Below the pieces are notes generated by a model. That model had not been told where the DNA came from. It did no database searches and worked only from the letters and a program-made list of their open reading frames with translations. From Girardia tigrina (taxonomy: Eukaryota): a stretch of 50,248 nt of DNA. Numbering within the stretch: the stretch's first letter is position 1; each line of letters begins with the position of its first letter. The stretch is taken from assembly GCA_001938485.1 (NCBI GenBank), contig MQRK01217301.1, forward strand, positions 55,462 to 105,709, read 5' to 3'. Made by a program: the position numbers and the translations under genes. Shown here piece by piece: positions 2,263 through 49,950 of this stretch.

Positions 2263-4053
2263 CAGGGGTCGGCAACCTGCTCTCCATGGGCCGGATTCGG
2301 TCCGCGAAAGAATTTCGGCAAAAATAAATTTAAATAACAGATTATTATAAATTTAATAATCAAAATTTTTTTTATTATTCATTAAAATTCAATATTTAAA
2401 TTAACCCATGAATTCTAAGATCAGGAAAGTAGATGGCGAGTGTCGAATTTTTCAAGATACTTGGACATTTGATTATTTTTTTATCGAGCAAATGGAAAGC
2501 CAATATGTCTTATTTGCCTTGAAAAGGTAGTTGTGAATAAATATCAGACACCAAAACATAACCCACGATTTTGAAAATTTAAAAACAAATACTGGATAAT
2601 CAAGGAGAGATGAAGTTAAGCAGCTTAAATCAAAGTTTGAAAAGCAGAAATCATTTTTTACGAATAAAAAAAGTGAATGTGAAGCTAATACCCGTGCTAG
2701 CTATGAAATCTCAAGACTTATAGCTAAAAAGATGAGACCGTTTACGGATAGTGAATTTGTTAAACAATGTTTAATGGCAATAGTGGATATTTTTTGATCA
2801 GAAAAAAAGTCATTATTTTCTTCCATAAGGCTGTCTGCTTGGACTGTCACAAGAAGCATTGAAGATGTGTCATTAGACGTTAAAAGTTTTTTAATGAACA
2901 CCTGTAGCGAAATTACAATATTTTTAAATTGCAATTGATGGCAGTACAGACTTAAATGCTCAGCTTACAGTATTCGTGAGTGGTATGACTTCGAGTTTCC
3001 ATGTTTTTGAAGAATTTATTTAGTTAATTCATTTGAAGGAAACAGTTAATAGATCAGGCATCTTTGAAGTAGTGATTAATATGATATCCAAAATGAACTT
3101 AGATTTTTGAAAATTAATACGCATCACAATTGATGCTACACCAGCAGAGGAGGAAAAAAGACTTTGTTGAACTATTACAGATACACATGGAAAATCTTGG
3201 ACTTCCACAGAAGATGGTGAAAATTAATTGTATTATTCATCAAGAAGCCTTATGTTCCAAATCTTTGAAACTGAAAAACTTAATAGACATTGTTATGAAG
3301 TTTTTAATCTAATCATATCTTGTTGATTAAGACAATTTTCGGTGGATACAGAGGCTGAATATGGAGACCTAGTCTATTTTTCCAATGTTCGCTGGATAAA
3401 ATTCAATGATCAAAGGACTATTAAAATTACATAATGAAATTGTAAATTTCCTTCAAAGCAAATCAGTGGATCTATCACATTTTCACGATCCTGATTGGCT
3501 TGCATCTTTTGCATTTCTTGTGGACATTACGAGTCATTTAAATAACTTGAATTTATTTTTGCAAGATAAAGCTCAGCTTATAAATAAAATGTTTGACCAT
3601 ATTCTTGCACTCTAAAGAAAACTACACCTGTGGGAATAAGAACTTCAACATGAAAATTATGACATTTTCCATCCCTTCAAGAATACAAACCAAAAAATCC
3701 AGAAATATTTGTGAATATGATCAAGGATCTGAAGAATGAGTTCTCATCTCGTTTCACTGACTTTCGCTTGCACGAAGATGAATTGAAGCTTTTTGCAAAT
3801 TCTTTTGACATGTGCGTGTGTACTGTATCAGAATGCTTTCAAGTGGAGTGGATTGAAATATAACGTGACGACTGATTGAAATTAAAATTTCACGCTGACG
3901 ATGTTCCTTTGCTTGATTTTTATACAAAATACATTTATTCTAATAGGAAGTATCCGAACTTAGTGAAGCACGCAAAAAAAGATGACATCATTGTGAGAAA
4001 TTATTTTCAAAATTGAAATGTACTAAAAACAATTTTAGAACAAGATTAACCGA
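2263..4053 (+). mobile_element. hAT (Buster/SPIN/GTF2IRD2-like) DNA transposon, transposase pseudogene, 3' truncated
   Basis: Left TIR CAGGGGTCGGCAACCTG at 2263, preceded by nnnTAnnn-type 8-mer ttataaag. Broken ORF from ATG 2408: MNSKIRKVDGECRIFQDTW..., KINCIIHQEALCSK, WLASFAFLVDITSHLNNLNLFLQ, CEKLFSKLKCTKNNFRTRLTD. Many stops and frameshifts; no right TIR seen. Confidence 0.9.
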
Positions 4054-4059
4054 CTGTTT

Positions 4060-4700
4060 CCGAATTGTCCGAAAGAAGGGAGCATCTGGGTCCATAGAGA
4101 TGCCTTCGGACTCCAGGATACAGAAAACGCATTCGATTTCTGATTTAAAATATCGACTTTGTTTTCTTTCACACAACACAGTGAGACCGTATCGTTCAAA
4201 ACCATTAAAAACGACTCTTTCTCATTTGGATGCCACCGCAAACCGACGAACTGGCTCTCGGTATTCGGTTTATATTCACAAAATTTCGATTCTCCTCTCT
4301 CCAGCAGCGATCTCTCGACATGTAACAACTCGACAGTCGCCAATCAACCATCATCGGTCACCAAGGCGACCAGCAGAATCGATCCACCGCAACTGAACTC
4401 GATCCAGGTAACACTCAAAAGGAATTTGATCGAGAAAATCGGATCAACACTCACGAGCCCGTCCCTCAAGTCGACCGATTCAACACTCGCTCTCTCGTAC
4501 GATGAGACACTGCAGAAATCCACATCGTTGCCGGCGATCGACGCCACTAATCCCGCCCGGCAATCGATTGCATTATATCGGATGCTTTTCGTGCATTTAG
4601 TCGATGACGGTTTAAATTGATGAAGCGTTTGAAAAATAACGTTTATCGAATTCGATTTGTCGTTAAATCTTTCGAATCTTTCACAGAATACTTTAACCAT
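4060..4700 (-). pseudogene. NUP214/Nup159-like N-terminal beta-propeller fragment with an in-frame TGA
   Basis: ORFs 4344..4850 and 4035..4343 share a frame and are separated by a single TGA (4344-4346). From ATG 4700: AIDCRAGLV...WIEFSCGGSILLVA...GLRWHPNEKESFLMVLNDTVSLCCVKENKVDILNQKSNAFSVSWSPK. This is colinear with NUP214 motifs as recalled (AVSNKYGLV, LALSCD, MKWNP, SVCWSPKGKQ). Confidence 0.65.
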
Positions 4701-5048: not shown

Positions 5049-7415
5049 ATGGACATAAAGCGCACCAAACCAACATGGGTCATTCCAATTAACGATACAC
5101 AGATCCCCGACATCAAGTTGTACAACAGCCTCACCAATCGCAAGGAAATATTCAAGCCGGTAGTTGGAAACCACATCGAGTGGTACAGCTGCGGCCCGAC
5201 CGTCTACGACTCGTCTCACATAGGACACGCCCGCACATACATCTCCATCGACATCATTCGGCGTGTCTTAAAAAACTACTTCAAATTTGATGTGCATTTC
5301 GTGATGAATATCACGGACATCGACGACAAGATCATCAAGCAAGCCCGACAGAAACTCCTCTTCGATCAATATCTTTATAAGCACAATACCTCCTTGACTT
5401 CCGATAGGGCGACACTGACAGCCGATGTCAATCTCTCTAGACAATTCATTAAAACAAAACTTGATCGAGAAAAGAATAATGACAAAAGAGCGATGTATAT
5501 AAGTCAGATGAAACGGATCGATGGGTTTTTGGAAGCCGAGAAAAATGGGGGAAAGATCATGGATAGACTGGATGAGATCCGGGATCCGTTGTCGGACTGG
5601 CTCGATTGGGAGAGAGGAAAGGACGTGACGGACAACTCGATATTTGAGGATTTGCCGAGAATGTACGAGCGAGAGTTTCTCGAGGACATGAAGAACTTGA
5701 ATGTGCTCCCGGCTGATCGATTGATGCGTGTTAGCGAGAATATGAAACAGATTATCGATTTTATAGAGAAAATCATCAAAAATGGATACGCGTACGAAGC
5801 GGATGGATCGGTCTATTTCGATACCGATAAGTTTGATAAGAGTGATAAATTCTTTTACGCGAAATTGTGTCCGATGGCGTTTGCAGGAGAAAGTTTCATG
5901 GCGTTGTTGAAAGAAGGCGAGGGCGTTTTGACAGATCAAGAGACTGAAGAAGGTCAGCCTGTTGACTCTGATAAGAGGAGCGAGGCGGACTTTGCGTTGT
6001 GGAAGAAGTCGAAGGCCGGGGAACCGAGTTGGGATAGTCCGTGGGGCAAGGGTCGACCCGGGTGGCACATCGAGTGCTCGGCGATGGCTGCCGACACTTG
6101 TGGAGATCGATTGGATATTCACACCGGTGGTGTTGACTTGAAGTTTCCGCATCATGATAACGAGATCGCGCAATCGGAGGCGGCATTAGATACACATCAA
6201 TGGGTAAACTATTTCTTGCACACGGGCCATCTCACCATTTACGGTGTCAAGTTGAATAAAAGTCTCAGGAATTTTATTTCTATCCGGGATACTTTGGAAA
6301 ATTATTCAGCACGTCAATTGCGTCTTTTGTTTCTGTTGCAATCTTGGAAAGATACACTCGATTATAGTGATGAAACCATGACTGAGGCTCTTGGATATGA
6401 GAAGTTGGTAATTGACTTCTTTTACACTATTTCCCACACGGTCCAGTATCACAGTCTTAACGATAACCGAGCATCGGTAGAAGATATCGTTTTGAAGAAT
6501 TTCTTTGAGAGTTCTCGTGACCAGGTCCATCAGGCACTTTCTGACTCAATAGATACACGAGAGGTCATGTTCGCTCTGAAGAATCTAATCATTGCAACTA
6601 TCAATTATCGCAAAGAAATCGGCATTAAAAAATCAAACCCAAATCAGTTAAAATCAATCATGAATTACGTTTACGACATATTACTCATGTTCGGCGTAGC
6701 AGATGATTGTACAAATCAATGCGGATTGATCGCATACTCTTATCAAGAGCTTGGTGCTATAATAACTGGAGCAATCAAAGCATCGAAAGAATTTATTGAG
6801 AGTATTGAAAACTTAAATGAAAGTGGTGAAAAGTTCATCCCTGAAATAATCAATAATTTCCTCAAACAGTGTCGTCTAGAATTTAATATCGACGTAAGAT
6901 CATCACCTGTATTTCAGCTGTGCTCTCGGGGGACAATCGATAAATTTTTGATGAATCTTGCTAATCTTCGACAATCGATAAGAGCCGAGAGCCTCAAAAA
7001 CAAGTGGATTGTGTTCCTAAAAGAATGTGATCGCCTCAAGGACGTACAGCTATCAGAGATTGGTGTGAGACTACAGGACTCAGAAGAGAACATACCGATT
7101 GTAGGACTATTACCGATATTGACTCAAGATAAGAAAATAAAAGATAAAAAAAAGAAAGGAAATACGGTACCAGAGAATAAAGAGACTTCAGAACCTGTGA
7201 AGAAATTAAATCATCATGTCGATCCAAAGGAAATGTTCAAGGTTGGACCATACCAGGGACTCTTCTCAACCTTTGATGAGACTGGGTTGCCAGTTCTCGA
7301 CGTTGCCGGAGCGGAGATACCAAAAAATAAACTGAACCAAATGAAGAAGCACCAGCTACAACAACAGCAATCTTTTGACATTTACTTCAAAGATCTGAAT
7401 GAATATTTAATTTAA
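5049..7415 (+). CDS. CARS1: Cysteinyl-tRNA synthetase, eukaryotic cytoplasmic type; intronless divergent paralog (788 aa)
   Basis: Intact ORF with [71 protein letters not shown] (in place of KMSKS), anticodon domain CDRLKD..GVRLQD and eukaryotic C-terminal FDETGLP. AATAAA at 7452-7457. Confidence 0.97.
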
Positions 7416-7514
7416 CTTTTATGCTAATTTGCAATTTTATTTATTTTTTTGAATAAAATATGTGTTTATTTTATTTTTTGCCTAATTTCTGTTAACGATA
7501 TTCTTATATTATTA

Positions 7515-10050
7515 TCCATACAAGTCTTTTATGGTATTGAGACCAAATTGATTGTGAAATTGTTCAAAATCGCGTGCAGTTATATTAAAAGGATGACGAA
7601 CGAGGTGAACTGGGATGGACAAATCTCTGACAATTTCGTGTCCATGATCGTACAAAAGCGAATTCTTATGGAAGGTAATCCAGTGGGGGTGTATGGAAGG
7701 CTCCATCAAATGGAGTCGCAAAGGTATTGTGTAATGCAAGTGGTATTGCCAGTGGTGTTTGTTTAGAAGTGGACGGTCGTATCGTATAACATGGGTCATG
7801 GTTAAGGAAGGTCAACGACAGGGCTCATATCAAACTGGCCGAATTGGATGCAGTGATTCATGGAATAAATTTGGCGATTTCGTAGAAGTTGAAGACCATA
7901 GAAGTGTTAACAGACTCTTCAACGGTGTACAGTCATTAATTTCAGGGGATAAACCTATCCATATCAATGACTTTGATGAAGTACTGGCAAGGCGCAGGTT
8001 GGCAATGATCGAAGATGTGATGATGGAAAATGACTTGGTGGTAACCGTTGATCAGGTAAAGTCTGGGGAAAACAAAGCAGACGCACTGACTCGAGTGCCA
8101 CGGTCATGGTTAGTTAAGGCTGTTGCGTTGGTCGCCATAGATGAACGGAGAATTTTCACTATTTTGGAATAGACAAAACGTTGTATCTTGCACGTCGTAT
8201 TATCCTGACATGGTGGTTCATCAAGACGTCGTAAGGAAGATGGTGGAGTCGAGCAATAGATGCTGGTCTATCGATCCTGCTCTAATGTAATGGAATAAAG
8301 GAGAATTGGAAGTCGCAGAAAATTGGGATTGTGTCGCGTGTTACGTAACATACTATAGTGATGGAAAGTATCTTACTTTAGAAAACTGGGGACCGAGTCG
8401 TTTCGCGCTGTGGAGAAGAATACCGCCTGAAACTGATGACAGTATCGCGGAACAACATGATAAGATATTTCGAGAGCATGAACCGCCCAGACCATTGTTG
8501 TTAGACAATGGTGCATTTTTCAGAAAACAATTGATCGAAAAATTATATGTATCAAAGTAGAAGGTGGAGCTGATTATAGACCAGCCGGGAACGGCATAGT
8601 CGAGAGGAACCACAGGACGATCAATCGGATGGCTGCAGGGAGCGGCCGAGGCGTATTGGATATGGTATATTGGTACAACCTGGCGCCAATGAGTGGAAAG
8701 AACTCCGAAGTGACGCCTAGTATTTCAATATTTAAATATAAATGGATGATTCCTGTCTTGCAACCTAAACAAGTTAATTTTAATAATATTGGAAAATTTT
8801 CAGCTGGGGAACAAGTATACGATAAAATTAATATTCATTAAAGATATAAATAATACTTATTAACAACATCAATATGAGGTTTACAACATTTATTATTACC
8901 ACAAGCGCACTCACTATTTGACATCTCTCTTGATTAATATATTTCTGAGTTCAAACTAATTATTTTCAATAAATGAAAATATATTAATAAAAATTATTAA
9001 TTATAAAGAATCTAATTGGTTGAAATTAAATCTAAACATTTTTTTTAAAAAAAAGAACATATTAAATTAATATATTAAAATTTTAAATTACATTAAAAAA
9101 TAAATAATACATTCAATAATTATTTAAAATCTTTTTTACTTTAAAATTAAAATAAATTATTTATAATTAGTAAGAATCAAAGAAAATATCGATCATCCAT
9201 CTGTGTAGGAGAGGCACAATCCGAATCAACATACAACATGCACAATATCAACACACAATTCAAAACATTCCTCACATTACGGATAAAATAATAAGAGATT
9301 TGTGTGAAGAAAGTAAACAGATATAATAAAATTATAAATAAAAAGAATAAAAATCTAAAAAAAAGGTTATAAAAGGAAGAAGATTTTAAAAATCCAGGAA
9401 CACAAAAAATTATTTTATCTTTTAAAGTTCAGAAAGAAGATTTTAAAGGTTAAAGTGCATAATAACCACCTACAAAGATTTTGAAAAATTACATCATACG
9501 TGGTCGTGTATTAACAATACCGAATTCTTGATGACGCATATATTACTCACCAGCAGAGATAATTTATTTCAAGAATTCGATATAAATATTTGCGAGCAAT
9601 ATCATAGATCAGGCAAAATACTGATCACTGGGATCATCGAATGGAGAAAGAGAAAAAGAAAAAAGTTTAAAATTTAATTAAAGGTGCGGGAAATTTATAA
9701 TTATCCCCTAATATATAATTATATATTTTCAGTTAATATATTTTATATATATTTAAAATCACCTAGGAGTAAGCGAATTTCGTTTCTCCTTTTTACCCAA
9801 CTTATAAATTCTAATAAATAAGGTTAAGTCAATTTCAAAATCTGTGTAAATATTTTGATCTTCAATAAATATTTTATTAAAAGAACTTCTTGATTTTTTT
9901 GTTTTAACTTAAATATCACCTCGATACCCAACAAGAAGATCGAAGCGATCGTGCCGTAGACCTGCATGGTAGAGTGACTATTCCATATGATCTAGAGATC
10001 AGGGGGAGATGTGTTAAATTAATGAATATTTATTAATTTATTTAAATTAA
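7515..10050 (+). mobile_element. Decayed Gypsy LTR retrotransposon 3' half (RNase H, integrase, PPT, start of 3' LTR), interrupted ~8830-9900
   Basis: RNase H-like ASGIASGVCLEVDG..SWLRKVNDRAHIKLAELDAVIHGINLA..VLTDSSTV and ENKADALTRVP. Integrase-like GPSRFALWRRI..LLDNGAFFR..RPAGNGIVERNHRTI. Pol tail PTRRSKRSCRRPAW*SDY (~9927-9985), then polypurine tract AGGGGGAGA (10001-10009) and TG at 10010. Confidence 0.85.
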
Positions 10051-10849: not shown

Positions 10850-13800
10850 CTCCGCGGGAGTCTAGTGTGCGCGGAGAAACGGAGAATTCATAGCCGCGTT
10901 TGAAGTAAGTTGCCAATCGTGAATGTGAGGCGTGTATAACTACAAACCAGAGTCAATTGGTATTTGTGGCCGCATCAGGTGGTGTAGCTTTAAGACTGGT
11001 CAGGGTATTTAACGCAGCTTTGATTTGGCTTGAGTCTCAAATTTTAGGCGTTCAGAAAATTCGAAATTCAAAACTCTCGAATCGGCTTCCTCTGCCGCTA
11101 TGTACTTCTTCAGATGGTCCAAAAAGTGTAAATTGCGTTTTCAAACACCGGATAGTTTCAGTCGTCGTAACCATTCTCAGCAATAAATGTATAGGGGAAT
11201 CGAGACCACGCATCCAGTACCATAAAGATGCATTTGTGTCCATTCAAATCAACTTTTGGGCCCATGAAATCGATTGACCGGAATTTCTATAATCTCCGCA
11301 AGGGAATATTGTGGCCGTTCTTCAGCATCTCAAACCTTGGCTTCATTTTCTTGCATAACGAATAGTTAAAGCTGCATTGTCTGAAGCCTCCTTTGACATC
11401 TGAAATATCTAAATTTCTTGTTTTGATGAACATTTTGATGTGCATCAATCCTTGGTGGCTCATACTTTCATAGATGGTTTAAATGAGATTTTTTGGTCTT
11501 CAGTAATAATGAACACTCTACTAAGAGCATTGGTAACATCATTAGATTTTCCCGGAGGGTATTTTAGTTAGAAATTATATTAAGACAGATCAATTCACCA
11601 GAACAATATAAGCTTGTCCTAAACGTTTCCGGTCAATAATGAAAATACAATTTTTTTCAAATTTTTTGGCATTATTTATTTGATATTGATATTGATATAT
11701 ATATATATATATATATATATCGATTTATTTATAGCATTATATGGACTACGAGATTACAAAGCTTTAAATCAGTGTGTTGCTGCGTCACTATTCGAAAAAT
11801 ATCTTTGCGTTCTACGCATTTTCCTGGATTTTCTGTCTAAAATGAAAGCTACTCCTTTGTTCCATAATTCATAGCATTTCCAAGAAAAATTGGCGAAACG
11901 GGTTCACATCTGAAATAATTTCGAATGCCTCTAACTCTCCTCAAGTCTATTTCTTTTCAACGTCATGTAGTCTGTACAAAAGAAATAGGGTGTTCAGTTT
12001 GCAATAAACTTTCTCCGATACATGCAGACGAGGTATCTATCTCGAGGATCAGTGGGAAATCGTTATCCAACGGTACCACTAAGGAAGTATTTTTAATTGA
12101 TCTCTTCAGTGATGAGATAGCTACAACACATTCCTCGGTGAGTAAAACTTTTCGATTCGTTTTAGCAACATAAAGAAACCAATGATAATGACAAAGTCTT
12201 TGGTCCATTTTAAATAGTAAATACAGAGATCATTAAAGCTTTCAAGCTCTTAGCTTGTTTTTGGGATAGGAACATTCATTAAAGGAGATAATCATGAATC
12301 ATCGGGTTCCATTTTTCATTCTTGAAAGTGTGGCATGGGAGCAATAATTTTGTCTTAGAAAAGCAACATTTTTCATTGTTGAATGTCAGGTTTAATACCT
12401 GAGCTCTTTTGAAAAATGCTTCCAATATGCACTGTTCTTCCTTATTCTTTCAAAAACTACTATTTTATCAAAGTAGTGAACCATCCCATTCAAACCACAA
12501 AGAACATGATTAATGAAGTGACAGAAGGCTGACGCACCGTTTGTAATCATAATAGGTAGGCGGGTGGATTGCCAGAGATCTATAAGTGTTTGCTTTTTGT
12601 CAATGAGAGGCACTTAGAAGTAAGCAGACTTCAGATCGAATGTGCTGAATATTTTATTTTCATAAAATTATTCCAGAGTCCCCAGAATTAACGGAATAAT
12701 GTTTTCGTCTAACTCAGTGAAATGGTTAATTCTGAAAGCATAATTCCCAACCATGTGCAGTTTACCACCTGGATTTTTCATTACCACCACTTCAACTTGA
12801 ATTTCTCGATAATATCTTCTAGCGACAATTTTTTCAAGTCATCAGTAATAAATTGCCTTTCCAATTTCGTCCTGTACCGTGACGATGCCTGAATCGCCTT
12901 AGCCGTTTCTCGAATTTTATTGCTGTAAATAAGTTGAATATTCAGCAAATAAGCTTTACTTTATTTAAATTGGGATGGAGTTGTTGTAGAAGACACGGTC
13001 AAGATTGGTAGTTTTCCAGGGAATCACAAGTGAATCTTTTAAAATTTAGAAAGGCGGACATGCTCAGAATCGCCTTTTTGCACAGCTGGTCAACGTCATA
13101 AATCGGCGAATTTATAGCAGCCCCGTTCAAGAACTGAATATACATCGTAGTTCCTCGTACAGCATTCAAATTGCTTTCAATAGCGACTCAGATGTCAGCA
13201 GGGTTCTGTCAACCGTATTCTAAATTTAGCTGCAATTTCCTTCGATAGCGAAAACAAATCACTACCTATATCGATAAGCCATTTTAGCAGGCGTCCCTTT
13301 GTAGTGACCTCCATGTGTTTTTGTCTAGATTCTTGTCCATCTCTCCGCCAAATCGTTCCCACAACCAAAGTATTACATGTTTTCCATTGTTGCTAAAGTG
13401 TCCGACTTTGTGATAGTTAAAATGTTGCTGACCATTAGCGGGGCAATCCACTCTTTGGTGATTTTGCGTCGATCTATACCAGTCACACTTCCTTTGTCGT
13501 CCTTTTTCATTGGTCCTTGCTCTCAATAGGTGCCATGTTTAATGAGTTTGTGGGTTGATTGTACAGTTGAAGTTTGAATGTTATTTGTGTAGCTTCTTCC
13601 TAATCCAAGGTGAGGCAATTTTCTTGCCTGTATTGCTTGGCGAATTCCAGGCACACAGCCTTTCTAACTTCATCCTCTTTGAGACTCAAAAAGAAAGCAT
13701 CACGAAGAGCTTCATCTGCATAATCGATATGGAATTCATAATATTGGCAAGTTTTCCGTAATTGGCTAACAAAGCTATTGATGGATTGATCTGTTTCTTA

Positions 13801-14289: not shown

Positions 14290-14407
14290 CAAACAACAAT
14301 CAAATTCTAACATACAACAAATGAAAAACTATCAACGTGGTGCTCATGGATATTTTAACAAAAATATTTTGTTTTTGTTAAGTGGATCTAATTAAAATAA
14401 TATACAT
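14290..14407. repeat. 118-bp segment whose exact inverted copy is at 15581-15698
   Basis: Base-by-base reverse-complement identity by eye. Confidence 0.95.
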
Positions 14408-15398: not shown

Positions 15399-16324
15399 CA
15401 GGCATGTCAAACTCGCGGCCCGCAATGGATTTAAAATTTTAACAAATTTTTAAAATTTTCTAAAAAAATCTATTTTAAAAATCAAATTTATTGAAAAAAT
15501 AAAAACAAATCTTGGTGAAAATTTGATGTATATTATTTAATTTTGATTTGATTATTTGATTTTGATTATTTGATTTGAAAATGTATATTATTTTAATTAG
15601 ATCCACTTAACAAAAACAAAATATTTTTGTTAAAATATCCATGAGCACCACGTTGATAGTTTTTCATTTGTTGTATGTTAGAATTTGATTGTTGTTTGAA
15701 CCTTTGAAACTTTGAAAAGAGGTTTTCGGATTTTCAAAGTAGGAGTCTCATTTAAATATTTTTTGCTCTCCGATGTCTGTTGACATTGAAAATATTGATG
15801 AAAATTTGCAAATCGAGTTTATAGAACTACGATGCGACACTTTATTGAACCAAAAATATAAGAAAATTGGTATTCCAGAATTTTACGGATACTTCCGCAG
15901 GTCGTTTTCCAAGAATTTTACATTTTGTTATTCGCATATTATCCATGTTTGGTAGCACATATATTTGTGAACAGCTTTTTTTCACAAATGAAGATGAATA
16001 AAACTGCACAGCGAACTAGATTGACTGAAGAACATTTAGCATTAATTTTAAAAATTACATCAAGCCAATATTTTATACCAAATTTTGATGATTTGAAAAA
16101 TGAGAAGCGGTGCATTATATCCAGCAAAAAATAAATCATATTCTTTTTTATTAATAAATGTTTCTATAAAAAATTTTTTTGTTTTCTTTATGGTAAATTT
16201 ATATTCAATTAACACTCAAAGTTTGAATTTTTAATAAACCTTAGTAGATGTGGCCCGAAAAAAGATTTTGAAGACAATTTTCGATGAATTTGGCCCGTAT
16301 ACCGAAATGAGTTTGACAAGCCTG
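15399..16324 (+). mobile_element. Non-autonomous hAT (Buster-type) deletion derivative, 926 bp
   Basis: 16-bp TIRs CAGGCATGTCAAACTC / GAGTTTGACAAGCCTG (1 mismatch) and 8-bp TSD gtgtatat / gtgtacat. Retains the transposase C-terminal region (LQIEFIELRCD..., FSQMKMNKTAQRTRLTEEHL). Confidence 0.95.
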
Positions 16325-18045: not shown

Positions 18046-19184
18046 ATGGACAAGAAGCGCACCAAACCGAAATGGGTCATCCCGACCAACGAGGCACAGA
18101 TCCCCAGCATCAAGTTGTACAACAGCCTCACCAACCGCAAGGAGACGTTCAAGCCGGCCGTCGGCAACCACGTCGAGTGGTACAGCTGCGGCCCGACCGT
18201 CTACGACTCGTCTCACATGGGACACGCCCGCACCTACATCTCCATCGACATCCTTCGTCGCGTCTTGAAGGACTACTTCAAATTCGATGTGCACTTCGTC
18301 ATGAATATCACGGACATCGACGACAAGATCATCAAGCGCGCCCGGCAGAGACACCTCTTCGACCAGTATCTCCATGACCACAAGACCTCCTCGACTGCCG
18401 CTCTGACGGCCGATATCAACCACTCGAGACAATTCATTAAAACAAAACACGACCGAGAGACCGACGGCGACAAGAAGGCGATGTACTTGAGAGAGATGAA
18501 ACGGATCGATGAGGTGTTGGCTGTCGGCAAGAATGGGGGCGAGATCATTGGGCGACTGGACGAGATCCGGGATCCGTTGTCGGACTGGCTCGACTGGGAG
18601 AGAGGGAAGCACGTGACGGACAACTCGATATTCGAGGATTTGCCGAGAATGTACGAGCGAGAGTTTCTCGAGGACATGAAGAACTTGAATGTGCTCCCGG
18701 CCGATCGATTGACGCGTGTCAGCGAGTACATCAAACAGATCGTCGATTTTATATTGAAAATCATCAAAAATGGATTCGCGTACGAAGCGGACGGATCGGT
18801 CTATTTCGATACCGACAAGTTCGACAAGAGCGATAAATTCTTTTACGCGAAATTGTGTCCGACGGCGTTTGCGGGGGAAAGTTTCATGGCGTTGTTGAAA
18901 GAAGGCGAGGGCGTCTTGACGCAACAAGAGACGGCTGAAAATCGACCCGGGGACTCGGGGAAGAGGAGCGAGGCGGACTTTGCGTTGTGGAAGAGGTCGA
19001 AGGCCGGGGAACCGAGTTGGGATAGTCCGTGGGGCAAGGGTCGACCCGGGTGGCACATCGAGTGCTCGGCGATGGCTGCTGACACTTGTGGAGATCGATT
19101 GGATATTCACACCGGTGGCGTTGACTTGAAGTTCCCGCATCATGACAACGAGATCGCGCAATCGGAGGCGGCATTAAACACGCA
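18046..19184 (+). CDS. CARS1: Cysteinyl-tRNA synthetase (canonical, 3 exons, 778 aa), exon 1
   Basis: [30 protein letters not shown]. Donor CA|GTAAGT at 19185 (phase 2). Exons of 1139+347+851 = 2337 nt join in frame and are colinear with the intronless copy. Confidence 0.97.
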
Positions 19185-19758
19185 GTAAGTATTGATTAAT
19201 ATTGGTGTAGTTGATTATCAGTCCGCACTGGTTTAAAGGTATAAATCAATGGAAACAATTTAACTGTGACTGCGTTTTGGACATTCGTTATGTATAATAT
19301 CTTAATTTAATCTGTTTTTTTGAGGAATTTGTTTTTAATTTAATTTTTTAAATATTTATTAATTTATTTTTCTAAATTTTTAAAATTGATTTATTATAAA
19401 ACTAATACATTTCAATAAAAAATTGATTGAAAATATAGCTTTCTTGTCTGGAACAAATCTTGCGATTGATTTTTCGACCACTTTCAGTCATCCAATTGAG
19501 CGGAATTTTTTTATACAGGCTTGCTTCCGATGACAATACAATATTTTAAAACATTTACGGCTCTACATAAACCGCATATGCTATAATTTAACTTTATGAA
19601 AAAAATCAATAATATTAATTAATACGTACAAAAAAAATATTTTGAAATAAAATTTGCTTTTATTAAAATAAAACTTTGTTATTTTGGTTTTATTATCATT
19701 TCTGTTATTCGAAATCAATCGAAATATTTTAATTCCTAAATGATAACTAAAAATAGTA

Positions 19759-20104
19759 AAATAATATTATTAATAAAAAATTTTTTTATAAAAACAACCA
19801 CGTTTTTCAAGCATTACCAATGCACTAAAAAGAGGAAAATAATTATTTTTCTAGACATGTGAGAAATTTTATACCTAACCAAAAACGTGGGGCATAGAAA
19901 TGATCGATTGTTACTGAAAAGCAGTAAAGAGGAAATAGTAGTTACTAATAGCAGTAATTAAGAAATCCGCCCCACGTTTTTGGTTAGGTATAAAATTTCA
20001 CACATGTCTAGACAAAAAAATTATTTTCCTCTTTTTAGTGCATTGGTAATGCTTGAAAAACGTGGTTGTTTTTATAAAACAATTTTTTATTAATAATATT
20101 ATTT
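19759..20104. repeat. Long near-perfect inverted repeat (~135-bp arms, 75-bp spacer) in intron 1
   Basis: 19759-19893 is the reverse complement of 19969-20104 with few mismatches. Confidence 0.92.
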
Positions 20105-20214
20105 ACATTGTTATTTATATTAAAATATCATTTAACTAAATAGAATAAAAAACAAAAATATTATCATATATTAATTGAATATTAAAAAAATATTAAAAAT
20201 TAAAATAAAATAAT

Positions 20215-20284
20215 TGGGTATAGTTCCGTACGGCCCCAGTAAAAATAAAATTATTTTTCTGGTGTCCATACGGAACTATACCCA
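20215..20284. repeat. 70-bp hairpin/mini-MITE in intron 1
   Basis: TGGGTATAGTTCCGTA ... TACGGAACTATACCCA with pairing that continues almost to the centre. Confidence 0.88.
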
Positions 20285-20975
20285 TTTAAAATTATTAACA
20301 AAAATAACAGAAACAAATTCATATTTTTTTGACAATCTTATTTGTACAATATCTGAAAAATAATTGAAAATTGAATGAAAAAAATTTTTATAAATCCATT
20401 AAAATATTATTATTTTAAAAATAATGAAGAAATTTATAATAAATCCGAGACATTTAAACAATTTAACTGACAATAATTTAAATTGTTACCATTGATTTTT
20501 ACATTTAAACCCAATGGGGACCCAAAATATTTGAAGTTAATTAAATTCTTTAAATAATAATTGGAATTCTAAATAATTAATTTACTAAGAGACGCAGAAA
20601 ATATACTGATTATAAAGACGAATTAAAATAATTAAAAATAATTTTCCACATTCAAACGTAAATATAGAGAAATATTTGTGCTTTAAAGAATCAATAATTT
20701 TTAATTATGTAAAATTATATAACTCATTTTAGAGTAACAAATTAAGTTGCAATTTTTTGGGGAATTAATTTTTAATTAATAAATTAAATTTATCTTAAAA
20801 TATAAACGGAATTCCAAAAAAATTTAAATGTTATAAAACTAAAAATATACATTTTGGAATAATAATATTAAATTATTATTTATTTTAAATAATAATTGAA
20901 ATTCTATATAATTAAAAAAGTATTAAAATAATAAAAAGTAATTATTATTATCTAAATTGTATTAGTCTTATGTAA

Positions 20976-21320
20976 TTAACAATAATTTTCCGTTTGTTAA
21001 AAGTAAATCAATAATTTTTAAAATATAAAAAAATTATATAAAATCTTTAGAGTCACTTAAAATAAATTTAATAGTATAAGTTATATGATATAATTTTTTT
21101 TCAAAATTTTATTAATAAATTATTTTGAATTTTAATTGAAATTCGTATTTAACAATTATTTTCCGTTTGTTAAAAGTAAATCAATAATTATTAAAATATG
21201 CAATAAAACATTTTTAGAGTCAAATAAATAATTTAATACTATAAAATATATGGTAAAAAAAGTTTTATTTCAAATTTTAATTAATAAAATATTTTTTTAG
21301 TTTTTATTGAAATTCTAAAT
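20976..21320. repeat. Degenerate ~175-bp tandem duplication in intron 1
   Basis: ttaacaaWWattttccgtttgttaaaagtaaatcaataatt...tttagagtca recurs at ~20976 and ~21149. Confidence 0.75.
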
Positions 21321-21444
21321 AATTATTTTTCGAAATTAAAATTATAATCAATGGAAATAATTTATGTACTTAATATTTTTTAACAATGATATTTTTCTTT
21401 TTCAATTTATTACTAAAATCGCACTGAAATGATCATTTTTTTAG

Positions 21445-21791
21445 TCAATGGGTGAACTATTTCTTACATACGGGCCATCTCACCATTTCCGGCTGCAAGA
21501 TGAGTAAGAGTCTCAAGAACTTTATTTCTATTCGCGAAGCACTACAGAATCATTCTGCACGTCAATTGCGTCTTTTGTTCTTGTTACAATCGTGGAAAGA
21601 TACACTCGATTATAGTGATGAAACCATGACTGAAGCTCTTGGATATGAGAAGCTGGTGATCGACTTCTTCTACACTATTTCCCACACGGTCCGGTATCAC
21701 AGCCACAACGATAACCTAAAACTGGTAGAAGATGTCGATTTGAAGAACTCCTTTGACAGTACTCGCGACAAGGTCCACCAGGCTCTTTCCG
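21445..21791 (+). CDS. CARS1: Cysteinyl-tRNA synthetase (canonical), exon 2 containing KMSKS
   Basis: Acceptor ttttttAG|T CAA TGG at 21444; HTGHLTISGCKMSKSLKNF; donor G|GTAATT at 21792 (phase 1). Confidence 0.96.
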
Positions 21792-22024
21792 GTAATTATT
21801 ATTATTTTTTGATCCCATATATCGACCTTACAACCTTTAATGTAAAATTTATATAAATAATTATTTATAACATTTCAATACGAATTATAATAATTTAAAA
21901 TTGTATTAGCTCTAATCGACATTTGCAAACACATAATTATTAAAATTATAACGGATGAAATTATTCAACAGACTTTATTGAGATGGAATGTAAATTGTCA
22001 CAATTGTAACACATTTGGTACGGC

Positions 22025-23085
22025 TGTTATATTACCCGCCACATATTATGTAATCTGCGAAGATTTATTTATTCTTTAAGATTAATTATTTATTTAATTA
22101 CTTTATTTAATAAATTAATAATAATTAATTAAATTTATTTTAATTAATTATTTAATTCATTGAATAAATAAATTTAAATTAAATAAATTTTAATTAATTA
22201 TTTATTTATTTTTATTAATTTAATTTAATAATTAATTTATTCTTTAAGATTAATTATTAATTTAATTTATTTTAATTAATTAAATTCATTGAATAAATAA
22301 ATTAGTGAATCAATAAATGAATAAAAAGTAAATAAAGTAAAGAATAAATTAATTATTGAATGAATAAATTATTTAATTTATTATTTATTTTATTAAAAAA
22401 ATTATTTAACAAATAAATTATTATTTTAATTATTTATTTTTTTATTAATTTAATTTAATTATTCTTTAAGATTAGTTATTTATTTAATTACTTTATTTAA
22501 TAAATTAATAATAATTAATAAAAATTAATTATTTTTAATGTATAAAAACATTTCAAATACATTCCAGAATCGTGCATATTGATAAATTGTTGTCTGTTGA
22601 TTAAAATTTTTCTTTAAAATCAGAACAAAACATTTAAATTGATTCCAAATAGAATTTCATCAACAGCACAATATTCCACATTTGCATGTAGAAGTATGCA
22701 TAATAATGAGAGAAAATAACTAAATCATTTCAAACATTTCCCTCATTAACATACTATCACCTTAAAGAGATACTTTCAATAAAATAATTCAATACTAAAA
22801 GTGGTCTCTCAAAACACTACTAATTTAATTAATTAATTTAATTCATTGAATCAATAAATCAATTATTACACAAATGAATAAAAAGTAAATAAAGTAAAGA
22901 ATAAATTAATTATTGAATGAATTAATTATTTAATTTATTATTTATTTTTTTAAAAAAAATAATTAATTATTTCATTTAATTATTAATTAACAATTTTATT
23001 CATCCATTCCACCAGTTATTCCTCTAATTCGTAACGAAATTATGTAATCTATACAGTTTACATAATATATGGGGGCAGTATAACA
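22025..23085. mobile_element. TIR-bounded element with AT-rich internal repeats in intron 2
   Basis: tgttatattacccgccacatattatgtaatctg versus reverse complement of the right end, tgttatactgcccccatatattatgtaaactg. Confidence 0.65.
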
Positions 23086-23093
23086 TTCTTTCC

Positions 23094-23775
23094 ATTTTCA
23101 TTATTACTACACATTTTTTGAAACTCAACATTTTCAATAACTATATTTTTAGTTAGATTAATGAGTTATATCAATGAAAAAATATCAATTTAATATGAAA
23201 AAAATCATTTTTTATGAAACAATTTTTTTAATTCGACACATTAAAAAATAATTAAAATTAAAAAGTAAAAGTTAAATCGACCATAAGACGACACAAATTT
23301 TTTAATTCGACACAGTAAAAGTTAATTTTTAACATTTTATTCATTGCAAATTAGCTGGCCAACGCAAGTATTTCAGTTTTTTATCATTCGATGCATTCAA
23401 ATTGTATTCTTGCACATCCATTGCAATAGCCTCACTCAATGATACATATTTTTTCTTTAACCTCAGGGCGACCTGACAGAGCATTTTCTTGATTTTTTTC
23501 ATGAAAATTGTTTTATTTCATATTAAATTGATATTTTAATATTAAATACATATTTTTCATATTAAATACATATTTTTTTATTAAAAATTGATTTTTGTCA
23601 TATTAATATGGTATTTTTATATATAATAATATATAAAAATTAGTTCATATTAAATTGATTTTTTTATATTAAAAACATTTTTTTCATATTAAATACATGA
23701 AAACTCATTAGTCTAACTAAAAATCCAGTTATTGAAAATGTCGAGTATCAAAAAATGTGTAGTAATAATGAAAAT
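23094..23775. mobile_element. Mutator-like remnant with 74-bp inverted repeats in intron 2
   Basis: 23094-23167 and 23702-23775 are inverted repeats. Internal minus-strand KYVSLSEAIAMDVQEYNLNASNDKKLKYLRWPANLQ* resembles a MULE transposase C-terminus; a related copy lies at ~42835-42950. Confidence 0.6.
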
Positions 23776-24170
23776 ATTTCATTTTAGCTATTGGTCAAAT
23801 TAAAAAAAAAGTTTTGAATTAAAAAAAACTAATCGAAATTTGAAAATGTCGAAATAATATATTTGTCCCATTAAAAGAATGTGTCGAATTAAAAAAAAAT
23901 TGTCGAATTGTCATGGAACCGCTGAAACTTTACCTATTCAGTATCTAAACTAACAAATTACATTACTTGTCTACCTCAATACATATTAATACTTCAAAAA
24001 TTAACCAAGTGCAACCATTTTATTAATCAAAAAGATACCGAGACTTTGTGCTTGAAGTAGCCTATTTATTCCAATCACCTATTCAATATTCTCCTTTTAA
24101 TCGGGTTACATTGCTGACACTTCGTGTTACTCTTCCCGTTTTAAGTTGTTTTAAAAAATCCAGTTTATTA

Positions 24171-24376
24171 CCGTATTTTTCCGTGTATAGGATCTTATTT
24201 TTGGGTGTGCATTTTTGGAAATAAATTAAACAAAGTTCCTTAGTTCATTCCAAAAAATAAATTGTAATCTTTTGTGTTGGAGAAATGTTTCAAATATTTA
24301 CTAATTTTTATAAATTAGCGTTAAATGTTCTTTAAATTTTGACAAAAAAGGGGGTATTATACACGGAAAAATACGG
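24171..24376. mobile_element. pogo/Tc2-type MITE (206 bp)
   Basis: Perfect 19-bp TIR CCGTATTTTTCCGTGTATA / TATACACGGAAAAATACGG, flanked by TA on both sides. Confidence 0.92.
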
Positions 24377-24599
24377 TATATTTTAATTTTTAAATATTAT
24401 TGTATTATAATAGAAAATGATTTAAGCTATAAATAATAATGAATTAAAATATAAAGACATTTTCAGCATATTTCGATGTGTCTAATTTATAACTAATTAA
24501 AATATCGAAGAAAGTAAATGTTAATTTTTGAGCAGCGCTCTCCAATATCCATTGCAAATGAACCAGCAAATATTTATTCATTTTCTGACATTTATAACT

Positions 24600-25050
24600 G
24601 TTAACAGTTTTCAGTCTTCAGACGGGTGTTTAACGAGCAAATATCTGGAGTGTTTGCATTTGCTGTATTTACATATACATTAAGGTAAAAGCAAATATTC
24701 TTAGATTCTATAAGTCGCCTCATTAACATCCTGCTTGTCTGATATATTCTTTTATGTATATTCTAATTGAAAATATAATGATTGAAATACTCTCTTCTGT
24801 TCTTGATGTACATTGATACACTTCCGGTGTTTCGTTTTGCCGATTCCGTCCTTAGTTGATCATAGTGATTACAAATAATTAATGAAAGCATTTCACTTAT
24901 CAATACCGAATGTTGCTGAAGCGCATTCCGAGAGTTTTGTTGATTCGTGTTGGGGCTGGTTAGGTAAAGATGCGATGCAATTTTTCTGTTTACAAGGAAC
25001 AATAGTCCGCCTGCATTTTCAGACTATTTACGTTTGCGAATTACTGCGGA
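24600..25050 (-). mobile_element. Penelope-like GIY-YIG C-terminal remnant in intron 2
   Basis: NHYIFN*NIHKRIYQTSRMLMRRLIESKNI resembles H.FDW....IL.......RLI.ES..I; a hammerhead-like motif lies nearby on the same strand. Confidence 0.45.
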
Positions 25051-25265
25051 TTGCTTTTCCTACATGTTTTATAAATGATAACATGATGATAAAAAGCGCA
25101 CAGTAAATGTAAATAAATGTCGTATACATAGTTTTATTTATAAAAAACAATCAAATGCGAAATGAAACATTATACCAAAAAGATATAATATTGTAATTAT
25201 TCATATAAATATTTGAAAAATGACGACAGAGAATTTTTAAAAAACAAAATTTTCGTCAGAATATT

Positions 25266-25305
25266 TTTATTAATTTCGACGGATCAACCATCATCATCAG
25301 ACTGA
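25266..25305 (-). ncRNA. Minimal hammerhead ribozyme core, degenerate (stem I lost)
   Basis: Minus strand: CTGATGA-t-GATGG-ttgat-CCGTC-GAAATTAAT-A. Stem II has 5 bp, stem III is the palindrome ATTAAT, and AATAAA overlaps the end. Confidence 0.5.
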
Positions 25306-25520
25306 ATTAACGACTAAATATATTCGCGTTTATATATCAAAGCAATGTTTATGAAATCATTATGTAATTTAAATCATGAAAATATTTTCAATAAAGTTAC
25401 AGAGTATGGTTTTTGCACATTGATTTTATTAATTAAATAATATGTTATTCTAATCTATTTTATAACAGTTTTTAATAAAAATAAATAGATTCATCCATTA
25501 ATGATTATCCAAAATTCTAG

Positions 25521-26371
25521 ACTCCATCGACACCCGAGAGTCTATGTTTGCCTTGAGGAATCTGATTAGTGTAACCATCAATTATCATAAAAAATTCGGC
25601 ATTAAAAAATCAAACCCAAATCAGTTGAAATCAATCGCCAATTACGTTTACGATATGTTACACATGTTTGGGGCAGCGGATGATTGTGCAGATAAATGTG
25701 GATTGATCGCGTATACAGATCAAGAGCTTGGTTCTATACAAACTGGAGCAATCAAAGCGGCGAAAGCATTTATTGAAAGCATTGAAAAGATCAATGAAAG
25801 TGGAGCAGAGGTCATCCAAGGAATAATTAATAAGTTCATAGAAGATTGTCGACTAGGTTTTAATATCGATGTAAGAGCATCGCCTGTAATTAAGTCGTGC
25901 TCCCAGTCGACCCTTGATAAATTACTGGTAAATATTGCAAATCTGCGCCAATCCATAAGAGCCCATAGCATAAAAAACAAGTGGATTGGATTTCTTAAGG
26001 AATGTGATCGCCTCAGAGACTCACAGTTATCGGAGATCGGAGTGAGACTGCAAGACGCAGAAGAGGATGTGCCCATTGTCGGATTAATTCCACTCTGGGC
26101 CCAAGACAAAAAAGAAAAGAAGAAAGAGAATCCGGCTCCACAAAAGAAAGAAAATACGGTCTCACTTAAGAAGAAAATAGAACCAAGCGTTGACCCGAAA
26201 ATAATGTTCAAAGTGGGACCGTATCAGGGACTCTTCTCGGGTTTTGATGAGAATGGACTGCCGATTACTGATGCTGCTGGAGTCGAAATATCCAAAAATA
26301 AATTGAAACAATTAAAAAAGATTCAGCTCGAGCAGCAACAGGTATTCGATAAGTTCTCAGCTTCTAAATGA
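25521..26371 (+). CDS. CARS1: Cysteinyl-tRNA synthetase (canonical), exon 3: anticodon-binding domain and C-terminal extension
   Basis: Acceptor ttctAG|AC TCC ATC GAC at 25520; ECDRLRD..GVRLQD, FDENGLP; TGA at 26369-26371. Confidence 0.96.
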
Positions 26372-34449: not shown

Positions 34450-34792
34450 AATTAATTAATAATAATCAAAAATTAATTAATAAATAATCACAAATTAATT
34501 CATAAATAATCACAAATTAATTAATAAATAATCACAAATTAATTAATTAATAATCACTAATTAGTTAATAAATAATCACAAATTAATTAATTAATAATCA
34601 CAAATTAATTAATTAATAATCACAAATTAATTAATTAATAATCACTAATTAGTTAATAAATAATCACAAATTAATTAATAAATAATCACAAATTAATTAA
34701 TAAATAATCAAAAATTAATTAATAAATAATCACAAATTAATTCATAAATAATCACAAATTAATTCATAAATAATCGCAAATTAATTAATTAA
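34450..34792. repeat. Minisatellite, ~20-21 bp unit (aataatcacaaattaattaat[a]), about 16 copies
   Basis: Tandem units read directly. Confidence 0.93.
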
Positions 34793-37642: not shown

Positions 37643-39747
37643 ATGATCGCCGGTTATTATTTTGACCAAAAACCGATCGTCGTTAAGAAAGTTCCTAATT
37701 TTTATTTGCCGAACAAAGAGATCTTTCAGTCGAGTGTTGGATTGGATTTCGAAAACAGATTGTAATAACAAATCGATAAATGACGAAATACTGATATTCG
37801 CTCATTTCTGTGAGATCGTCGGACCGGTGCCGCTGGTCGTTTATCCAAAGAAATACAATCTCTCGGTCGAAATAATTGATATGATTGTGCTGAAGGCGAA
37901 TTCTGTGGATTATCAGTCGTGTGAAAGGGGTGAAACCGTGTCTGACGCCACCACGCATTCTCTTATGCTCGATACCATTTTTTGTTGTTTACTTCACTCT
38001 CTGGGACATTTATGCTCGTGGATTCGTGCGACCATGCTGCATTATCGTTTGCTGTAGGGACGAAATAAGAGCAAGGGAACTGTTTGTGACCAAAGTCTTG
38101 GAGATTAGTCAAAAATTAAAACCGCTATTGAACGAAAATATAAAATATTTTTATCAGGAGTTAGAATCGAATTTTTAAAAAAATGTGTGTGTATATGTCG
38201 AATGACTGTGGAATTGCGTGGCCGTTTCTGATTGGCCGACATGTCAAAGAAACAAAGGCTCGAATCGAATTTTTATTATGGCTGTAAATCGATCGAATGA
38301 ACTATATATTTTTTTGGTTGTTTTAACGAGTCAATTTAATTCAATAAAAGTTTTTTGGCACGAAAATTCGTTTTAATTTATTTGCAAAAATTCGCCATTT
38401 TTGAATAAATGCTCTTTAATTAAATGTGTTTGATTGCATATTTCAACTGTTGATTCTATTTTACAAAATCGATGTCTAAATTAGTCAATTTCGATAAATC
38501 CAAGTTCAATATCGATTGTGGATTATTGATTTGAAATAAATAAGGACAAAACATAATTTCGCTTAAATAATTAAATTGATGTCGCTTAAATATTTAGTCT
38601 AATAATAATCATTGGATTAAGTCTATGTTAATTAGCAAAATACAACTCTGTTAATGATTGACAATTAGGTCTCATCTGACATTAAGAATTTAATCAGAAT
38701 TTATTGATAGTTTGAATAATGATCTTGATTAAGTGTAGTTGAACTTTTATTATGCTTGAAATATTTTTTGTTAAAAATCGATTTAACTCTTGTATTATTT
38801 GTATGATTCGATTTTGAACACTGAACAAAAATATCTCAACGTGTAAATAAAAGGTGTTTGTGTGTATGAATTGCGTGTGTGTGTCTAATTGGGAATTTGT
38901 AAAAAGAAAATTGAATTATAATGGTGCATGTGTGTTTTGATATGTGAGATGTAATTGTGTGTGTGTATTGTTGATTTTTTATCACAATAACAAAAACAAT
39001 AAAAAATTACATAATAAAATTGTTTAAATAGATTATTTGATAATAATCTATATATTATTATTATATATATATTATATAAGATTATTTGATAATAATAAAT
39101 AAAGTTTGGCGAACTTTTCAATTTTTAATTTAATGAATGTTCAAATGGTTTATAATAAAAAGAATAACAGATCAACTTATATTACTGAATAAAAATTATC
39201 TAAAGCATTTACATTTGATTTGGGAATCAATTTCAAAATCGGAGTTAAATTTCCAAATTCTTTTTTGTAATGAAATTTCAAATTCCTAAGGAACAAAGGA
39301 AATCCGAGCTCAATGAAACGTGATAGAAAAAAAACATCATTTATGAAAGTAAAACATGAATTATTATTTGTCGATTGTGAGAGCGTACCAGTGATCGAAT
39401 ATTTGCCGATTCTCAATAGGATAAAATACAATTTACGAATTATTTTCAAAAAATGTCTCAATGAATCTACCAATAAAATTATTCAAAGATTAATGAATAA
39501 CAAATTTGACGAATTGCAAAATGATTGTGATTCTTCTATAATAAATACTCCAAATAAAAAATTAAAGCTTTGTAAATCGATCTTGAACAAATATCTACGA
39601 ACTGCTCACCCAGTCATTGATAAATTGTTTGGAGTATTGAATTCTTATAAATCTTCGTCGACCATCGATGTTTTTAGTAATTATACTCAAAACAATTCGG
39701 CTGTTACAAAACAATATTCTACTAATGAAAAAAACTACTTCCTCTGA
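37643..39747 (+). pseudogene. SMCR8: SMCR8-like (FLCN/SMCR8 longin/uDENN) gene, frameshifted in this assembly; probable exons ~37643-38283 and 39291-~39740
   Basis: ILIFAHFCEIVGPVPL, LKANSVDYQS, FTLWDIYARGFVRPCCI and NIKYFYQELE match SMCR8 motifs as recalled (ILISEFSEQVGPQPL, RIMSVDYQ, LTLYDLEARGFVRPFC, NRKAFAGELE). The downstream ORF has NKKLK (DKKLK-like) after acceptor cctaAG 39290. One unavoidable +1 frameshift at ~37950-37985. Confidence 0.8.
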
Positions 39748-49901: not shown

Positions 49902-49950
49902 NNNNNNNNNNNNNNNNNNNNNNNNNNNNNNNNNNNNNNNNNNNNNNNNN
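49902..49950. other. Assembly gap (49 N)
   Basis: N run. Confidence 1.

Follow-up and report, generated by a model that had tools for sequence, protein, structure and literature searches.

A processed cysteinyl-tRNA synthetase copy under purifying selection beside its spliced parent gene in the flatworm Girardia tigrina

The window analysed in this study, a 50,248-nucleotide stretch of a Girardia tigrina contig, contains two genes for cysteinyl-tRNA synthetase (CysRS), which lie 10.6 kb apart on the same strand. One is an intronless (processed) copy at 5049-7415 (+), an unbroken frame of 788 codons with no stop codon inside, and the other is its parent, an intact three-exon gene. In the parent, exon 1 (18046-19184, +), exon 2 (21445-21791, +) and exon 3 (25521-26371, +) are separated by two GT-AG introns at 19185-21444 and 21792-25520, the second of which is in phase 1. 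The two ATP-site signatures of class I synthetases read HMGH (18214-18225) and KMSKS (21497-21511) in the parent, and HIGH (5217-5228) and KLNKS (6249-6263) in the copy. The frame and all four motif positions are as given in a first-pass annotation of this DNA, which missed the RNA-mediated origin of the copy and the gene conversion described below. GC3 declines steeply along the parent (18046-26371), starting at 0.80 in early exon 1 and reaching 0.36 in exon 3, and the first intron of this gene contains a palindromic, MITE-like element (19743-20118), another of which is located at 879-1175.

The copy was assigned to the CysRS family by profile searches, with scores of 376.9 against PF01406 (cut-off 27) and 444.8 bits against TIGR00435 cysS (curated cut-off 340). 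An alignment-based model of the protein gave a pLDDT of 91, and its best fold match was Plasmodium CysRS, with a TM-score of 0.93 over the target; the pLDDT of 66 at residues 401-410 is uninformative, as this loop is inherently mobile. A census of homologues bore out the earlier claim that the zinc- and cysteine-binding residues are kept, namely C48 (5190-5192), W339, C343, H368 and E372 (the last three within 6075-6164, +), as are the lysines of KIIK (K94 and K97) and KxxK (K401 and K404), all four of which are also present in the parent. With its full domain layout, Zn/Cys ligands, HXGH motif, and both lysines and the last serine of KMSKS, the copy resembles a eukaryotic cytosolic CysRS of the CARS1 type; it departs from this type in KLNKS, K407R, R98Q, T226M and R664K, each of which is absent or nearly so among about 270-450 homologues. 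In a quick protein tree, parent and copy fall inside Platyhelminthes (SH-aLRT 99) as sister to P0002, P0239 and P0248. No transcript or protein matching the copy was found among the matches listed in sequence searches, and literature searches returned no paper on this gene and nothing relevant on retrogenes of CysRS or on its duplication in flatworms.

Parent and copy were compared exon by exon, with only codon counts being pooled. The copy crosses both exon junctions with no bases gained or lost: exons 1 and 2 are fused at 6196-6197 (+), where intron 1 of the parent is precisely missing, and exons 2 and 3 are fused at 6543-6544 (+), where the phase-1 intron is precisely missing. None of the three distant animals compared has an intron at the position of intron 1. 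The position and phase of intron 2 are common to the parent, Priapulus, Branchiostoma and L086, a distant relative of the host; this intron is therefore ancestral and was lost from the copy, and intron gain in the parent is ruled out for it as the cause of the intronless structure. Given the precise loss of both introns, of which intron 2 is ancestral, the copy is taken to be RNA-derived. The two genes are similar from 5 nt before the ATG to where the coding region ends, and no further; neither a poly(A) remnant nor a target-site duplication is visible around the copy. Such marks are expected to have decayed, since dS exceeds 1 in the unconverted 3' part, and the copy is therefore classed as RNA-derived rather than as inserted by retroposition. 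It may have been retroposed near its parent or, possibly, have arisen as a tandem duplicate that was stripped of its introns by recombination with cDNA. Like functional retrogenes of housekeeping genes that evolve under relaxed constraint, the copy shows precise intron loss, an intact frame and a dN/dS well below 1, and it changes faster than its parent at conserved sites; unlike them, it lies close to its parent on the same strand, exchanges sequence with it, and carries neither a poly(A) tail nor a target-site duplication.

Several other features are located around these genes. A GC-rich frame at 4035-4700 (-) is arranged head-to-head with the copy, with about 350 bp between the two starts; it contains an in-frame TGA (4346-4344) and is apparently truncated near 4090. 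This frame has a WD40/beta-propeller appearance, has no Pfam match and finds THOC3 as its best PDB match (E 0.37); neither search confirmed a suspected Nup214 identity. It could have given the copy a promoter. Downstream, the 3' flank of the copy (7416-7567, +) contains AATAAA at 7452-7457, and a degraded element resembling an LTR retrotransposon by eye, without Pfam matches, begins about 150 bp past the copy stop (7568-8840) and is missing from the related contig L085. A further retroelement remnant between copy and parent, at 11966-12208 (-), encodes a reverse transcriptase RNase H-like domain (PF17919, E 8e-7). The window also contains a perfect 118-bp inverted pair (14290-14407 and 15581-15698), a 22-bp tandem array of 15.5 copies with 93% matches (34450-34789) and a run of 49 N (49902-49950). 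At 37662-38180 (+), a folliculin/SMCR8-like gene (PF11704, E 9e-4) is frameshifted at a T6 run (37978-37983), in which the extra T may be a homopolymer assembly error. The other host genes in the window had been described as broken; this does not apply to the parent CysRS, which is intact and spliced, and in the folliculin/SMCR8-like gene the break may be of technical origin.

Both ATP-site signatures had been described as remodelled, a description that is not supported. The HIGH motif of the copy (M58I) is an ordinary class I form, as it is present in E. coli CysRS (1li5) and Coxiella CysRS (3tqo); I58 occurs in 5/264 eukaryotic CysRS homologues, in which M, L, V and I are all found at this position. 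Position 2 of HXGH accepts any hydrophobic residue (PMC10485003). KLNKS is unusual by comparison. As had been noted, codons 398-407 (6240-6269, +) carry five replacements (S398Y, C400V, M402L, S403N and K407R), together with three synonymous changes relative to the parent. Within the motif, K401, K404 and S405 are retained and M402 and S403 are changed. In the homologue census, from which primate protein rows were omitted, M402 was invariant in 453/453 CysRS homologues and N was present at position 403 in none. KLNKS is thus unique among about 450 eukaryotic CysRS, and a search for other carriers or close orthologues yielded, within set length windows and among the matches listed, only P0001/L001 and P0278/L085, both from the sister locus described below. 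In a scan of 185,579 prokaryotic genomes, KMNKS was found in seven ValRS-like frames, three of which score above the valS cut-off and which include full-length bacterial ValRS, indicating that N is tolerated there in at least one class Ia enzyme. These frames (L099:2332-2361, L087, L103, L106, L111, L120 and L127) come mostly from Bacillota MAGs, with one from Campylobacterota.

In the complex of LeuRS with ATP and leucinol, the residues that hold ATP are both histidines, both lysines and the final serine, together with the methionine through its backbone, and no side-chain contact with ATP is listed for the two KMSKS positions that are changed in the copy (PMC9424281). If these contacts can be transferred from LeuRS to CysRS, all ATP-contacting side chains would be kept in the copy. 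Changes are enriched in the ATP loops (3/16 versus 6/167, p = 0.03) and at signature positions (3/9 changed, p = 0.02), and a cluster at the loop has p = 0.05; all of these comparisons are post hoc, and the enrichment, at p = 0.02-0.05, is real but weak. The identical block of 45 residues next to the loop (aa 421-465, with nine codons differing) is present as claimed, but is not special, since a longer identical run of 60 residues occurs at aa 321-380. The suggestion of an oxidation-resistant ATP site is rejected, as the number of methionines rises from 15 in the parent to 19 in the copy, which speaks against avoidance of oxidation.

Changes at conserved positions are also found outside the ATP site. 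R98Q (5340-5342, +) directly follows KIIK, at a position occupied by R or K in 267/278 homologues, and T226M and Y231N are further changes. R664K (7038-7040, +) lies in the anticodon domain and replaces an arginine that is present in 354/354 homologues and also in the sister locus described below; it aligns to E. coli R439, which is among the residues mutated as anticodon contacts (PMC4536326). Of the equivalents of E. coli R423, R427, D436, R439 and D451, four are retained in the copy (R641, R645, D661 and D677), and that of R439 is K. Overall, 3/63 positions that are at least 99% invariant are changed, as are 17/237 (~7%) of conserved sites.

Parent and copy differ by a dN of 0.12 and a dS of 0.60. 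In a branch model over codons 48-615, with the sister sequence as third taxon, dN/dS on the copy branch (stem included) is 0.27, and neutrality is rejected with p = 8e-14. The copy is therefore under purifying selection, as the first-pass annotation had supposed in calling it a selected, specialised isoenzyme; the specialisation fared less well, as the changes in the ATP site are part of a protein-wide erosion that includes R98Q and R664K. This erosion is asymmetric: 15 derived changes at sites that are at least 95% conserved have occurred in the copy, from aa 58 to aa 765, and one in the parent (p = 5e-4). The dN/dS of the parent branch is 0.14; copy and parent do not differ significantly overall (p = 0.10), and a Tajima test over all sites gives p = 0.11, likewise not significant; at conserved sites, dN/dS is 0.14 in the copy and 0.02 in the parent (p = 0.07). 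The changes in the copy at conserved sites are more conservative than neutral mutation predicts (p = 0.002). With indels allowed, the survival of a neutral frame of 788 codons has a probability of 0.03 at 0.02 substitutions per site and of about zero at 0.05, and the divergence since the copy and the sister locus split is about 0.09. The mildness of the changes and the improbable survival of a neutral frame indicate that the copy protein has been maintained under loosened constraint. Since the split, the 3' block has accumulated three nonsynonymous and eight synonymous changes in the copy, compared with six and four in the sister. This recent and otherwise strongly constrained block contains just three replacements, of which R664K is one; together with the changes at 3/63 invariant positions, this may point to a changed function rather than to drift. 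Synonymous changes in the copy comprise 43 from GC to AT and 11 from AT to GC, an AT-ward drift that is also seen in the sister locus.

The sister locus is represented by two sequences from independent samples, L001 (JGI 3300013315) and L085 (an SRA assembly, SRR32618891), which are the same apart from 1 mismatch in 606 nt. The locus lacks introns at both junctions and is mosaic. Up to codon ~617 it is parent-like (178 versus 43 informative sites) and thereafter copy-like (16 versus 118; Fisher p = 5e-39), the switch corresponding to 6894-6899 (+) in the copy. About 150 nt of the 3' flank of the copy is shared by the sister locus with 92% identity. The dS between sister and parent in the 5' part (0.19) is approximately equal to that between sister and copy in the 3' part (0.17). 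An assembly chimera is ruled out for L001, since the switch and a 22-nt duplication both recur in L085, which stems from a different sample, and a compositional artefact is ruled out by the similar GC3 of all three sequences at the switch. The sister locus carries canonical HMGH and KMSKS, and its 22-nt duplication, which lies in an A-rich stretch, causes a frameshift ahead of the last ~80 codons. The duplication (L001:1950-1990 and L085:345-385) is identical in the two samples and is thus probably real. Disrupted orthologues in sister species had been named in advance as evidence against a specialised isoenzyme; the frameshift is of this kind, with the caveat that the only sister locus found is also canonical in its motifs.

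The synonymous divergence between parent and copy is 0.10 in late exon 1 and climbs to 0.53 by the 3' end (p = 5e-7); it does not peak at the KMSKS loop but shows a step where intron 1 interrupts the parent. This pattern is read as that of an old duplication with patchy homogenisation of its 5' part. On the simplest reading, the sister would be the orthologous (or a segmentally duplicated) locus in a close relative, with its 5' part overwritten by the parent of that species. Owing to this overwriting, the sister sequence does not date KLNKS. If L001 was sequenced from RNA, it could be the transcript of a chimera formed by unequal crossover, and a KLNKS copy might persist in that species.

The explanation that we favour, with moderate confidence, is that the copy is a redundant and less efficient CysRS, perhaps limited to certain tissues, in which second-shell residues erode between conversion events and the parent remains the essential gene. 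On this view it is an old RNA-derived duplicate of the flatworm cytosolic CysRS. The spliced parent would perform the bulk of tRNA-Cys charging, and the copy, presumably expressed, would encode a folded CysRS, most likely able to activate cysteine with ATP and to charge tRNA-Cys, though less efficiently, serving as a low-level or tissue-limited spare. Because the copy would be redundant, selection would preserve the fold and those side chains that take a direct part in catalysis, and would tolerate mild changes at invariant second-shell sites, both in the ATP loops (M402L, S403N and K407R) and on tRNA-binding surfaces (R98Q and R664K), while conversion from parent to copy would occasionally reset the 5' part. 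Counted against such a spare are the non-significant differences in dN/dS, at p = 0.10 overall and p = 0.07 at conserved sites, the mild enrichment at the ATP loops (p = 0.03 and p = 0.02), the changes at 3/63 invariant positions and the position of R664K in a constrained block.

A different and unlikely possibility is that a CysRS-like fold has been selected for tRNA-independent cysteine activation, persulfide synthesis, or a scaffold or signalling role, so that residues of the ATP loop and those that read the tRNA would have been freed jointly. Invariant residues have been lost at the ATP loop and in the anticodon domain while the remainder is constrained (3 versus 8 in the recent 3' block, R664K included), the lysines of KIIK and KMSK are retained, and the synthesis of persulfide can be separated from aminoacylation (PMC5660078). 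TARSL2, the vertebrate duplicate of threonyl-tRNA synthetase, is not required for charging but does influence development (PMC10200997). However, the Zn ligands, the HXGH histidines, R641, R645, D661 and D677 are all retained and the changes are conservative; the retention of the lysines carries little weight when only ~7% of conserved sites (17/237) are changed and the second KIIK lysine is variable (157/280 homologues); and the sister locus is canonical and frameshifted. A retrogene freed from tRNA charging and kept for such a job, which would make it an early animal counterpart of MshC erased by conversion in the sister lineage, is likewise an unlikely account.

That the copy is a recently dead processed pseudogene which has yet to acquire a stop is judged improbable. 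The frameshift of the sister locus, the transposon-like remnant ~150 bp after the copy stop, the in-frame stop of the upstream head-to-head frame and the AT-ward drift of synonymous changes would fit such a fate, whereas the survival of a neutral frame (0.03 at 0.02 and about zero at 0.05 substitutions per site, against ~0.09 since the split) and the filtering of conserved-site changes for mild chemistry, which implies that most arose under selection, would allow only a very recent death. An isoenzyme with an ATP site positively selected for resistance to an inhibitor or to oxidation appears quite improbable, in spite of the uniqueness of KLNKS among about 450 homologues and a weak concentration of changes in the ATP loops (p = 0.02-0.05). 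Its HIGH motif is canonical, methionines have increased from 15 to 19, most derived changes at conserved sites lie outside the ATP site, divergence steps at the intron 1 boundary instead of peaking at the loop, and KLNKS is missing from the sister locus; moreover, we know of no natural CysRS inhibitor that acts on flatworms. An artefact of assembly or consensus is highly improbable: a homopolymer error probably exists elsewhere in the window (37978-37983), but 2.4 kb without indels, differences enriched at synonymous sites, precise exon fusion, and independent contigs sharing the 3' end and flank of the copy all argue against it.

Among known duplicates, MshC of mycothiol synthesis is the precedent for a CysRS duplicate with a tRNA-independent role. 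MshC lacks the anticodon domain. The copy keeps this domain, and its score against TIGR03447 (MshC), 214.7, does not reach the cut-off of 485.1. IleRS2, too, is a duplicated class I synthetase that differs in a signature motif, and the first-pass annotation had drawn a parallel to its mupirocin resistance. The parallel does not hold: hyper-resistance in IleRS2 stems from GXHH, a swap of positions 1 and 3 (PMC10485003), whereas the CysRS copy has no G/AXHH swap and changes only the free position 2, and to the consensus residue. In animals, the closest precedent for keeping a second synthetase is TARSL2 (TARS3), which also stands beside an essential cytosolic parent and is the only second cytosolic synthetase copy in vertebrates, such copies being rare in animals (PMC10200997). 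TARSL2 occurs throughout the vertebrates and has gained an N-terminal extension; in contrast, the CysRS copy has no new domain, is lineage-restricted and has a frameshifted sister. As far as its sequence tells, the copy is a protein of the CysRS family and an RNA-derived duplicate under purifying selection, of neither the IleRS2 type nor the MshC type.

On present evidence, the copy is a somewhat unusual duplicate and not a new enzyme class. Parent, copy and recombinant sister record conversion across a spliced junction, which, provided that the sister contig is genomic, points to cDNA as the template. The copy furthermore offers a natural experiment on which 'invariant' CysRS residues a protein can lose while it remains under selection, as M402 and R664 are otherwise 100% conserved. 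If the protein were unable to charge tRNA and yet needed, the finding would matter much more.
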